A stretch of DNA of 63,016 nucleotides, counting the filler, from Reticulomyxa filosa (Eukaryota > Protista > Foraminifera), in assembly GCA_000512085.1 (NCBI GenBank). It is 18 parts of 18 records of this genome, joined end to end, with 100 filler letters (N's around TTAATTAATTAA, not from the genome) between each part and the next. Parts side by side here need not be neighbours in the genome. Positions count along the whole stretch, not along the records: positions 38,023 to 42,330 come from ASPP01013058.1; 17 more parts are not named here. The stretch is one strand, 5' to 3'. The notes under the pieces are model-generated. The model saw only the letters and a program-made list of their open reading frames with translations, searched no databases and was not told the DNA's origin. Both the position numbers and the translations under genes were made by a program. Positions 38,023 through 42,330 of this stretch are shown here, piece by piece (position 1 is the stretch's first letter; the number at the start of each line of letters is the position of its first letter).

Positions 38023-39512
38023 GGGAGAACACAGGAAAAAGAAAAGGAAAAAAGTATCCAGCAAAACAGAAGTATGGCGAAACAAAATGGCCAAATTGCA
38101 AGTTAGCACTGTTCATTCAAATAAACACAAATAAACAAAGGAACGTGACATTCAACAACAATAACAATAATAATAATAATAATAATAATAAAAGTCCCAA
38201 TGTGATACAGAAAAGACAAAAATGACGCAAGTGCAAATTGAAAACGAAAGAATGATTTCGGAGAGAGATGAGGCATTTCGATTGCTACGCAAAGTGGAAA
38301 AAGAACATGAATCGCGACTGCAGAAACTAAAGTCTCAGCACAACGAAGAATTGACAGTTTAATTAAACAAATGCTTCCACACAAAAATCAAAATAAAGTA
38401 TTTTTCTTATGTTTTTACAATACAAACGTACACAATGACAATAATAACAATAACAATAACAATAACAACAATAATGATAATAAGCAACTCTCAAACCGTT
38501 TTTTGGAATCTGTTGGAGCCGAGAATGAACAAGAAGTAAAAACGATAATAAACAAATTAAAAGAAAAAAATGAATCATTACAACAGCAAGTCCAGATACT
38601 TTCTGAAAGAGTTTAACATTTTTGAAAAATGAAAAAAATTTTGGAGTAGATCACTCTATTTTTTCTGCTCCAAATAACGTAACATATACATATATGTATA
38701 TATATCTTACTTTATTTATATCATTTGTATGTATACATCTATTTCAAGTACACAAAGAGTTTTTAATCACATATTTGCTAAATAGTTAATAAGAAAAGAA
38801 CAGTCGTTGTTAGAAGCACTGCAAGCAGTGAATGATATAAGCATAACCACGGATGATGGAAGCAAAGCGGCTCAACCAACCACTATTCATCGACCTGCAA
38901 TAGGGACAGACCGTTCATTGCCTGATGACAAATGGAAAAAAACACAAACCCCAACCTGGCCTGGTTTAGTAAGTAGTCCAAATTCTCGCTCCGCTGCGAG
39001 TTCAATTCTATCTCCTAATTATAAAAATGGAGGCAATCCATCTTTTTCTTCTTACAACAATAATGAGTCGAACACAAACTTTTTCAGAAATACTCCCAAT
39101 CGATCGTCTGCAACTCCACAAGAACGCTTGCAATCTCCCCCTCCTGTCAAATCGCCGTCAGGAAAACAAAAACCAATCGAATTGGTGACTAATGTCTCTT
39201 TGGCAGATGACGTCACAATGAAACACGAGGTCATTTTTATTAATTTTTTTTTTTTTTTTTTACAAAAAAAATTAGTAATGTGCATTATTGTTGCTAATAA
39301 ATGATCAGACAATAGTGAATTTGGAAATGGTGAATTCGTTGCTGGGAAAACAAGTTGCAGAATTGCAACAACAACTGGAAGACTTAAAACCAAAGATTGG
39401 CCCTAAGAGCTCTCCAGATAAACTTAAAAATAATGACAACTATCTCAACAATGTTGAAAGCTTAGAATCTACAGCTCACTTTGCCAATGGAATGCCTTCT
39501 GATTTGCCATAG
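38023..39512 (+). CDS. Multi-exon coiled-coil/Ser-Pro-rich protein, 5' truncated
   Basis: Coding-like exons (38371-38612, 38786-39228, about 39309-39512) separated by AT-rich GT-AG introns. Confidence 0.55.
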
Positions 39513-39941
39513 AACTACTTTTTTACGTATCTGTGGCCGCTTCCAATTTGGAACTATTTTTATTTTTATATTTGGGACAAGTGTATAGCTGACGTGGGGC
39601 ATGTGTACCTTTTTTTCTCTCCTGTTGTGTTGCTTGAGTGGAACTGCTGCAATGTTTCAATGTGAATAAATACCTTTCGTGTTAATTATTCTTTTGTTGC
39701 ATTTCTTTTCTAAGCCCTCTCAGAATGTTTGTCGTTTTATTTCCAAATTTTTCGATGAAAAGATTTATTTCAGTTTAGAGTTGAAGGTAATTTTTCCTTC
39801 TCTAAGCTCAAAGAAATGCGTGTGTTAGTTATTTTTTTTACAACTTTAGTTCTTTTTTCTTAGCAAAAATTTTTGAATGGTCTTGAGAATTTGAATCAAA
39901 AATAGAAATCAAAATCTAAAAAAACAAATATGTCAATCATT

Positions 39942-42179
39942 TTAATATCCTTTCACTTTTCTTTTTCTTTTAATATTCTTTTGTTCATATTTGACAGGTC
40001 TTCCAAATAAAGGGAACGAACCACCCCAACCAATGAGAGAAGAACTACTGTCAGGTTGGCGATATGTAATTACATAAGCAGGATAGGTACACTCGTTTTT
40101 GTACACGTTCAAAATTGTGTCTTGACGAATGAATTTACAATCCATACCAACCCCAGTTGCTACCAAACCCAAAAAGATTTGATGACAATTGCTTCCGTCT
40201 TGACAAACATATTGAAATCCATTCATGGAATAAGTGTTACTTACAGCAAACCATAAACAGCCCCCAATTCGAGCATATTGAATATCAAAGCCAGTTCCTT
40301 TCCACATTTTAGAAGGTTCAGTTGCTCTTGTTCCGTGCCAAAAAGCACGTTCTTCTGGGTTAATTCCTCTGCTTTTTAAAGCTTGGCAATATCGATAATA
40401 GGAAATCCACAATTTTCCTTGTTGGATTCGTTCTACTTTTACCCATTGACGTTTAATGGTAGCTTCATCTTCGACATAATTCAAAACAAATTTCCATTCC
40501 TCGCTGTCCCTCTTAACATCATACGATTTAGAAATATTGGTCAACTTTTCTAAGTCAATCAATTCCTCGTTCTCACTCGCCCCTTCTTTGTTTACAATAC
40601 TATCTTCAATGTCCTCCCATTGATCAAAGAAGTATTCATTGTTCAACCACTCCTTTCGATTCAAAATTACTGCCAAGGTAGGTCTGCCTCCAGGTTCACC
40701 GTTGTGACGAGGACGTATTGGTATTGGCATTGGCAATGATGGAGGGATTATAGGTAGTCTCACTTGAGGTTTCAATGGGCATAATTGAGGTGGATGAATT
40801 TCTACATCACATTTTTTGTTTGGGGGGAGAAAAATATATAATTGCATATACTTTCTTTACATTAGTTTGTATGCATCAAACACAGAAAAAACACCGAGCA
40901 ATTGAAATAGAAATAACACAACTTTTGCACAAAATGCAATTGTTCTGATTGCATTTTGGACACCGGAATTGATCAACAGTTCTTTGCTCAATGGCCAAAT
41001 AACCACCGCATTGAGTGTCATTGCAGTAATACAAGTCACCGAACTCGGCAATCTTTTTTTCAGTGAGCATGTCACTCAGCTCTTGGGCTTTGTTTTTAGA
41101 AATGTGCGTAGTAATGTCTTCCACATTAATTCCGGACAGACAAGTCGGACATTGTGGCGATTGCTTGGAGCTAAGGGCCGTGTTGACGATATTGGAAAAG
41201 CAAGTGTAGCAGATAGGATCTTGACAATTTCTCAATTCGACACCGCCAGCCGTTTGTTTGTTTTGGCATCCATTGCAAGTGAATTCTTTCAAGTAGTGTC
41301 CATCCTGGAGCATGCGGGCCATCTCTTCGCTGACCAAGGGGTCGTTTTTCTCCTGTTGTAATCTTCGGGCTTTCTCTTCGTTCTCTTTTCTTTGGATTTC
41401 GGCAATGAACTGTATGCATTATGCAGTTGCACAAGTTTTGCACAGATATGTATACGTGTACGATATTTTATCTTACATATTCAAAGTTGAAATGGCAATT
41501 AATATATTGGGGAAAAAACTTTTATGTTAAAAAAAAAAAAAAAGGGGGCGTATTCGCGAACTTGCAATTTTTTTCCTCCTTTTTTTTTTTTTTTTTTTAA
41601 CTTTTTTTGACATTTCTCTTTTTTCAATTCATCCAACAAACGAAACGCTCGACTTCGAGAACGGTCACTTTCAACGCCCAACTGTTCCATTTGTTTGATA
41701 AAACCTTCAACATTGCGAAAGGGGTTATCGACAATGTCCAAAACAGATCGAATGTATTCGGTGAACACAAAGTCATTGGTATCTTCCCATTGGTCTTTTT
41801 CGTGAAGTATGTTGGTATCTACTTTTTTTTTTCTTCCTCTTCTTCCTCCACTCGCATCTGTTCTTTTTCATCAACTTCCATGGAAGTCACATCGATTTTG
41901 CGAAGTTCTTTGGCGCTCGCTTTGACAAAGTAGGGCTCGTTGTTGCCACCCTGTTTGTTGATTTCCACAAAGTACTTGTTGTCGTCAAACAATCCGTGCA
42001 CAATGCCATCAAACCACTGTTGTGCATTTTCGTCAAACACCCGCACTTTCTCTTCGCTTTTAAAGTCCTCGGCCTGGTTGTTCTTTTCGGCGGCACGCTC
42101 ATTATTCGGGCCTGTCTGCACATTTTTCATTTCCGCATCGACAATTTTTTCTTCTTTCGCGGGTTGTTTCTTGTTACTC
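39942..42179 (-). CDS. Tudor/Agenet-like - RING - IBR - PARP-family catalytic domain fusion protein, probably 5' truncated
   Basis: KVRVFDENAQQWFDGIV...KYFVE; RING CNGC...CQDPICYTC...CPTC; IBR CNDTQC...CPKCNQNNCILCK|KIHPPQLC (intron 40922-40802 in frame); PARP VERIQ..LW..Y...ERAFWHGT...GFD...WFA...QIFLGLVATG...YPAYVITY. One poly-A frameshift near 41825. Confidence 0.85.
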
Positions 42180-42292
42180 TATAATCGTTGGTATTTCACA
42201 AAAAAATTGGGAAAAAATTTTTTTTTTTTTTTCAAAGTTTTTTTTTGTTAAAAAAAAAATTTTAAAAATTTTACTTGTTGCATGTTGTCCCC

Positions 42293-42330
<38 letters not shown>

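Follow-up and report, generated by a model that had tools for sequence, protein, structure and literature searches.

We confirmed that a RING1-IBR module of the RBR ubiquitin ligase type is joined to a PARP catalytic domain, in the absence of RING2, in a gene of Reticulomyxa filosa, and that this architecture is genuine and belongs to a foraminiferal gene family. The fusion had been proposed in an earlier note on the window (the whole stretch of 63,016 nucleotides of R. filosa DNA analysed here, filler included), and its elements were all found in place. We consider it genuine because the IBR is split across an intron, and because the same combination occurs in one reading frame in nine relatives from independent genomes, metagenomes and EukProt, none of which contains RING2. 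In our preferred reading, to which we assign a probability of roughly 0.5, the product would be a ubiquitin-guided mono-ADP-ribosyltransferase similar to PARP10, in which a decommissioned RBR serves as the ubiquitin sensor.

The gene lies on the minus strand of the piece ASPP01013058.1 (positions 38,023-42,330 of the window, 4.3 kb), a stretch of eukaryotic DNA rich in A and T and containing long A/T runs. Four coding stretches were recognised and searched separately, A (42178-41822), B (41795-41604), C (41409-40923) and D (40801-39942), and the nearest named relative of the PARP exon is R. filosa RFI_15207, most probably a paralog, with 60% identity. The features are as follows:

41822-42178, minus strand: exon A, open frame, with a Tudor-like barrel at about 42061-41888 (alignment with relatives and profile search)
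41796-41835, minus strand: poly-A run where the Tudor frame changes to that of the helical domain, relatives (e.g. L003) being continuous (enumeration of GT-AG pairs)
41604-41795, minus strand: helical domain of about 60 residues before RING1, found in all full-length RING1-IBR members
41410-41601, minus strand: intron between B and C, with its donor at 41601 (one base out of phase, by an A run) or 41561 (in phase) (enumeration of GT-AG pairs and paralog comparison)
41140-41277, minus strand: RING1, HOIL-1-like, with the motif CQDPIC (profile and structure match)
41271-41269, minus strand: Gly replacing the E2-contact Val of RING1, at the position of HOIL-1 V284 (alignment)
41220-41218, minus strand: Asp replacing the His ligand of RING1 (alignment)
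40923-41025, minus strand: first six Cys ligands of the IBR (Pfam IBR, E 1.4e-4)
40802-40922, minus strand: predicted GT-AG intron within the IBR, 121 nt, phase 1, 30% GC (phase and spacing)
40779-40801, minus strand: end of the IBR, His-x4-Cys (the motif is intron-free in P0003, P0009, P0158 and P0159)
40680-40778, minus strand: proline-rich linker at the position of the RBR IBR-RING2 helix (shorter Pro runs in P0003, P0158 and P0159)
40059-40679, minus strand: compact PARP (ARTD) catalytic domain with an N-terminal helix (Pfam, alignment, model and Foldseek)
40337-40335, minus strand: His of the triad (alignment with PARP14 and the family)
40259-40257, minus strand: Cys at the Gly894 position, in GGCLW (family alignment)
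40253-40251, minus strand: Trp of the triad (alignment with PARP14 and the family)
40115-40113, minus strand: Ile at the Glu position (alignment with PARP14 and the family)
39942-40058, minus strand: C-terminal tail with the basic cluster KRKRK and the stop codon (open frame)

Exon C encodes a helix, RING1 and six cysteines of the IBR, and exon D opens with the IBR His-x4-Cys, followed by the proline-rich linker and the PARP domain running toward the stop, as had been proposed. The intron at 40922-40802 that separates them, also predicted in the earlier note, was upheld: of the GT-AG pairs listed with compatible phase, this is the pair that yields the C-x2-C-x3-H spacing of intron-free relatives, and a GT is also found at this position in RFI_15207. 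Other donor and acceptor pairs were rejected, as they insert intron-like residues into the IBR or spoil its spacing.

The protein model built on this single splice gave the order of RING1, IBR and PARP correctly, but it missed the helical domain, and two further junctions are needed upstream. At the junction of A and B near 41821, no phase-compatible GT-AG intron joining the Tudor frame to that of exon B was present among the pairs enumerated, and the probable cause is either slippage by one base in the homopolymer or a genuine frameshift. Between B and C, homology points to a donor at 41601, although its phase differs by one base from that of the acceptor at 41410; an in-phase donor is available at 41561. 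The frame of RFI_15207 likewise resumes with FIAE after an A run and AG. Both frame problems adjoin poly-A runs, and the linker of RFI_15207 also bears a frame change in an A run; homopolymer assembly errors would be the simplest explanation. The model was also incomplete at its start. Since an AG acceptor ending at 42179 directly precedes exon A, and since relatives carry 150-250 extra N-terminal residues, including NZF fingers, in comparison with the R. filosa copy, the 5' end of the gene probably lies outside the piece.

Several further observations concern this locus and its paralog. The basic cluster of the tail (39945-39990, minus strand) resembles a nuclear localisation signal; the tail of P0004 is similar, and in most members the sequence stops where the PARP domain ends. 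As publicly annotated, RFI_15207 is missing the exon start with the IBR His-x4-Cys and the last PARP strand, both of which are contained in the genomic sequence (L001, 528-660). At 38371-39512 on the plus strand lie the 3' exons of a convergent gene, with low-complexity and coiled-coil sequence and a weak match to the Pfam 'short coiled-coil'; no similarity between this gene and the PARP family was found.

When 1.84 billion representatives were searched, about 27 close relatives emerged, clearly apart from ordinary PARPs, and in the tree the family formed one side of a branch with support of 100/99 against seven other PARPs. RING1, IBR and PARP stand in one reading frame in P0007, P0008, P0009, P0017, P0019/L004, P0021, P0158, P0159 and P0160, and two further members, L002 and L003, are intron-containing genes of marine metagenomes. 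Every named source is foraminiferal: P0158 is a EukProt/MMETSP1385 protein of Elphidium margaritaceum, P0008 comes from Nonionella stella, and Bolivina argentea (a member without RING-IBR) and additional R. filosa fragments complete the set. P0158 and P0008 are probably transcript-derived, given the MMETSP label and the nature of EukProt. The general order of domains is NZF, a variable part, Tudor-like or UBA, the conserved helical domain, a helix, RING1, IBR and PARP. In L004 (25-2133, Logan SRR25443653), an intron-free frame of 703 residues with 54% GC encodes two NZFs, a Pro-rich part, a UBA-like segment (called by eye), the helical domain, RING1, IBR and PARP. This locus also has an extra helical insert of about 50 residues after the IBR, its domain order recalls that of HOIP, and downstream of it lies what appears by eye to be the C-terminus of a convergent SNF2-like helicase.

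No RING2 was found in family members, as only one to five cysteines lie between the IBR His and WHG in the eight members compared. It is also absent from the R. filosa copy, in whose last exon the 153 residues that precede WHG include only two cysteines. The compact PARP domain with the H-W-I triad also occurs with other N-termini, in P0006, P0027, P0020, P0025, P0026 and P0015; these include ZZ-like zinc fingers, unannotated domains, and the helical domain plus Tudor combined with all or half of an IBR. P0006 (L010) combines IBR and PARP without RING1. Outside the RING1-IBR-PARP family, P0013 (1154 residues) was seen to consist of several tandem PARP-like repeats, with five Pfam PARP stretches.

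Among the modules that precede RING1, the Tudor-like domain named in the earlier note is moderately supported: exon A alone gave no Pfam match, and a seven-sequence profile of the region matched TDRD3 and Tudor-SN with E values of about 1e-3 to 4e-4. P0027 has a clear Pfam TUDOR domain, yet no pairwise similarity to exon A. The helical domain (P0009:178-243, and also L002 and L003) carries an invariant D-x-V-x-x-E-Y and a Gly/SRSRA motif; Pfam, ESM Atlas and PDB profile searches gave no assignment, and the fold search gave weak matches only (Z<=5.5). A second conserved domain, of about 170 residues, was noticed between NZF and the Tudor-like barrel (L003 at about 250-860, P0008:40-235, P0158:1-150 and P0159:35-195), and the pieces of it tested against Pfam gave no match. 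The NZFs of relatives have TF or TL in three of five cases and a hydrophobic residue before the last Cys in all five, a signature which we take to be that of ubiquitin-binding NZFs.

The RING1-IBR module most closely resembles that of HOIL-1, a relationship which we state as similarity and not as an assignment of orthology. HOIL-1 is the best PDB match of exon C, and the four top matches of a family profile of RING1-IBR are all HOIL-1 (best E 6e-10). A fold model made on P0009, a natural single-frame relative, reached a pLDDT of 87 and matched HOIL-1 residues 271-413 (7yui) with a Z of 10.9, followed by HOIP, Parkin and ARIH. In this model, the PARP fold comes directly after the IBR, with a pTM of 0.49 and without fixed packing between the modules. 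The C6HC IBR, claimed to be complete, is indeed whole once spliced, with six cysteines from exon C and His-x4-Cys from exon D; it ends in C-x2-C-x3-H-x4-C, as in HOIL-1, and it is intact in relatives. The IBR and PARP Pfam scores of the R. filosa copy both fall slightly below the curated cut-offs, and RFI_15207 is annotated only as hypothetical, which may be the reason why the architecture was overlooked.

The replacement of a RING1 His by Asp was correctly described, and was seen in the two R. filosa copies alone; it was rejected as a family trait, since the other RING1 sequences inspected retain the His. The zinc ligands of RING1 are mostly conserved, which would fit a retained RING function and speaks against a decommissioned RING, and P0017, P0160 and P0021 lose a ligand other than this His. 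The surface that should meet the E2 is more altered. It was shown previously that HOIL-1 V284 contacts E2, that V284A abolishes discharge of E2~Ub, and that RNF216 tolerates Cys or Ala at this position (PMC9834252). In none of 13 family members is the equivalent residue Val or Ile (it is G, K, R, A, S or Y), and the residue following the second RING1 Cys is polar or Gly in all 13; the hydrophobic position of the central helix is retained, and the loop-2 Pro is present in about half of the members. Since RNF216 accepts other residues there, E2 binding may persist without the Val. Contacts with ubiquitin fared differently along the module. Residues E383, V386, F389 and P392 of the HOIL-1 IBR bind allosteric ubiquitin, and HOIL-1(195-423), which is devoid of RING2, binds linear tetra-ubiquitin through RING1, the linker and the IBR (PMC10575588); this structure (7yui) is the one that the P0009 model matched best. 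In the alignment, these four IBR residues are identical in the R. filosa copy, with W379 replaced by Tyr and L400 by Ile. Against ubiquitin sensing, the linker contacts L354/I358/A361 are polar in the R. filosa copy (S/T/K), the residues through which RING1 of HOIL-1 touches the third ubiquitin (V296, E299 and L301) are not retained, and the conserved aromatic and Pro residues of the IBR may be only structural. Thus, of the E2~ubiquitin-binding scaffold suggested previously, the E2 side is weakened while the residues of the IBR that touch ubiquitin are kept.

The PARP domain was modelled with a pLDDT of 90 and a pTM of 0.87. Its nearest Foldseek matches are PARP12, PARP15 and PARP14 (E about 2e-10, TM 0.63-0.66); the model of a homolog scored a Z of 19.6 against PARP15, and TASOR, RCD1 and SRO1 share the fold with Z of 12-14. 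Alignment with PARP14 and with the family bears out the H-W-I triad read from the sequence earlier. His, Gly, Trp and the Cys at the Gly894 position are present in 26 of 26 members, an invariance that is partly due to ascertainment, as the members were retrieved with the R. filosa query. Ser at the S904-equivalent occurs in 23 of 26, Phe or Tyr at the Y907-equivalent in all, and Asn in place of Ile990 in 22; the Glu position is occupied by Ile in 22, Val in two and Cys in one, with one gap. The PARP1 numbering is assigned by motif. Distant PARP matches have the triad Tyr in 115 of 115, and Gly or Ala at the Gly894 position in 114 of 115 (Ala in 25). The domain lacks the insertion of about 30 residues which separates core strands four and five in other clade-3-like PARPs, and its donor loop is shorter by about 3-5 residues. 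The catalytic domain would be independent of RING1, since the same active site persists in P0006, P0015, P0020, P0025, P0026 and P0027, all of which are without RING1. Judged from its sequence, the R. filosa protein is neither an RBR ligase (RING2 is absent) nor a polymerase (Glu is absent), and has a PARP-family domain with a non-standard triad.

PARP10 provides a precedent for the preferred mechanism. PARPs in which Glu is replaced are mono-ADP-ribosyltransferases, and the UIMs of PARP10 recruit it to K63 chains, PARP10 modifying NEMO (PMC4695847). PARP10/ARTD10 and PARP12/14/15 share with the foraminiferal family the ARTD fold and Ile instead of the catalytic Glu, and in PARP10, as here, ubiquitin-binding modules stand N-terminal to the catalytic domain. 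PARP10 senses ubiquitin by UIMs, whereas the foraminiferal proteins are predicted to do so by RING1-IBR, NZF and UBA; their catalytic domain also differs from that of the clade-3 enzymes in having Trp for the triad Tyr, Cys for Gly894 and Asn for Ile990, and in being about 30 residues shorter. One may envisage that RING1-IBR, now without RING2 and without the canonical contact to E2, binds ubiquitin or its chains alongside NZF and UBA, that these modules bring the PARP domain to ubiquitylated targets and perhaps switch it on allosterically, and that the PARP domain would bind NAD+ through His-Gly, Ser and the aromatic stack and, devoid of Glu, attach one ADP-ribose unit either to the ubiquitylated protein or to the ubiquitin. 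Conservation of the His-Gly pair, the Ser and the stacking aromatic, with the mono-ADP-ribosyltransferases PARP12/15/14/10 as nearest folds, favours such activity, and the retained IBR contacts, together with NZF and UBA-like modules in relatives, favour ubiquitin sensing. Trp for Tyr and Cys for Gly/Ala could, on the other hand, block NAD+ binding. The architecture, folds and residue patterns were observed, and all steps of binding and activity are inferred from them. The suggestion that ubiquitin and ADP-ribose are coupled in one chain is thus supported as to the link itself, and weakened as to the route through an E2~Ub scaffold.

The main rival, given the Trp and the Cys, is a pseudoenzyme, a possibility which we regard as real though unlikely. 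The H-W-I/Cys pocket would then turn over no NAD+, and would bind protein, nucleic acid or ADP-ribose within a ubiquitin-reading adaptor, as may be compared with PARP13, TASOR and plant RCD1/SRO. Both substitutions in 26 of 26 members, the short donor loop and the missing insertion are consistent with this, as are the substitutions in PARP9 and PARP13 that abolish NAD+ binding (PMC4695847) and the fold shared with TASOR, RCD1 and SRO1. However, such strong conservation of His, Gly, Ser and the nicotinamide-stacking aromatic across proteins of about 30-60% identity is atypical of decay, and the closest folds are mostly active mono-ADP-ribosyltransferases. An artefact, i.e. two genes, a mis-join or a pseudogene copy, could be suspected from the A-run frame problems upstream of RING1 and in the RFI_15207 linker, but these problems sit in homopolymer runs between intact and conserved exons. 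The split IBR and the nine one-frame relatives refute it for the family, so that it is very improbable, and the architecture holds even if the R. filosa copy is a pseudogene.

Other readings retain a role for E2. It is doubtful, in our opinion, that the protein is a dual enzyme, in which RING1 would recruit E2~Ub and the PARP domain would ADP-ribosylate E2 or ubiquitin, or offer NAD+/ADP-ribose as ubiquitin acceptor in the manner of Deltex DTC, giving ADPr-Ub hybrids. The location of PARP at the position of RING2 behind a flexible linker (pTM 0.49 in the P0009 model), the retained RING1 fold with its central-helix hydrophobic position, and the precedent of Deltex RING-DTC (PMC12687431) are compatible with such a function, but the loop-1 E2 contacts are lost in 13 of 13 members and the loop-2 Pro in about half, prolines stand in place of the IBR-RING2 helix that binds donor ubiquitin, RING1 ligands have decayed in P0017, P0160 and P0021, P0006 is an IBR-PARP without RING1, and conservation of the active site is independent of RING1. 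We are still more sceptical of the general proposal that the PARP fold functionally replaces RING2, with RING1-IBR handing E2~Ub to the compact H-W-I domain, which would write ubiquitin-ADP-ribose hybrids or accept ubiquitin on its Cys. The specific form of the latter, in which E2 would load ubiquitin as a thioester onto the invariant Cys of GGCLW for onward transfer to a substrate, which could be ADP-ribose lodged in the same cleft, is improbable. A Cys in 26 of 26 members against Gly/Ala in 114 of 115 distant PARPs, in the very domain that replaces RING2, would suit such chemistry; yet the same Cys is kept in members without RING1 or IBR, its invariance is partly an artefact of the query-based search, the E2 contacts are degenerate, and Ala at this position in 25 other PARPs makes a packing role a simple explanation.

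To return to the ubiquitin-guided transferase that we prefer, known systems help to place it. HOIL-1L/RBCK1 shares NZF (present in relatives) followed by helix-RING1-IBR, is the best match in sequence and structure, and agrees in the spacing of the IBR end and in ubiquitin contacts; it has, however, RING2 with the catalytic Cys460, which is absent from the foraminiferal family, and the E2 contact V284, which is replaced there. Its UBL/LTM was not seen in the family, which adds the Tudor-like and helical domains and a C-terminal PARP. The likeness to DTX3L-PARP9 drawn previously proved imprecise, as it is the RING-DTC pair of Deltex, rather than PARP9, that performs the chemistry of that complex (PMC12687431). 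RING-DTC is therefore the proper analogy for the dual-enzyme alternative. Deltex likewise has RING near a domain binding NAD+/ADP-ribose in one chain, but DTC is not a PARP fold and the Deltex RING is canonical and E2-activating, whereas the foraminiferal proteins have an RBR-type RING1 with degenerate E2 contacts, and IBR and a linker between RING1 and PARP. No DTC domain was found in the C-terminal region among the Pfam, Foldseek and fold-search matches listed, the C-terminal domain being a PARP fold.

That PARPs are fused to ubiquitin-related domains is well established. Two surveys record U-box, UBCc, UBA, RWD, UIM and ZnF-RBZ partners, Rhizaria included, such as U-box-macro-PARP of Dictyostelium, fungal PARP6-UBCc, RWD-PARP6/8 of R. 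filosa, and rhizarian clade-3 PARPs with ZnF-RBZ (PMC4245714, PMC2964712). The latter, described by Perina 2014, may overlap the NZF-bearing members of the family. Neither IBR (no occurrences), nor a RING1-IBR module, nor an H-W-I triad is mentioned in these two surveys, no cluster with both IBR and PARP was among those listed from ESM Atlas, which covers clusters of at least 50 members, and no description of IBR with PARP was found in the searchable literature. The search for the combination of RING, IBR and PARP proposed in the earlier note thus revealed an architecture recurrent among foraminiferal relatives, and we found no published description of it; within the known theme, it appears as a conserved architecture with its own active-site signature.

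The named range of the family is one protist group, and its function is read from sequence and models. Nevertheless, RING1-IBR is usually regarded as inseparable from RING2, and here an old family of several species has kept it without RING2 and attached another enzyme. The family thus offers a natural test of the role of a stand-alone RING1-IBR, be it sensing of ubiquitin chains, allostery or recruitment of E2. Its minimal PARP, in which the H-W-I triad is conserved and the NAD+-cleft motif contains a Cys, a combination of which we found no description, probes how far the PARP active site may vary, and this domain is small, confidently modelled and easily expressed. If the PARP fold did replace RING2, the proteins would constitute a new class of single-chain E3/ART enzyme. 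The crosstalk between ubiquitin and ADP-ribose, a live topic in mammalian immunity, would be extended by this family to an independent foraminiferal solution.
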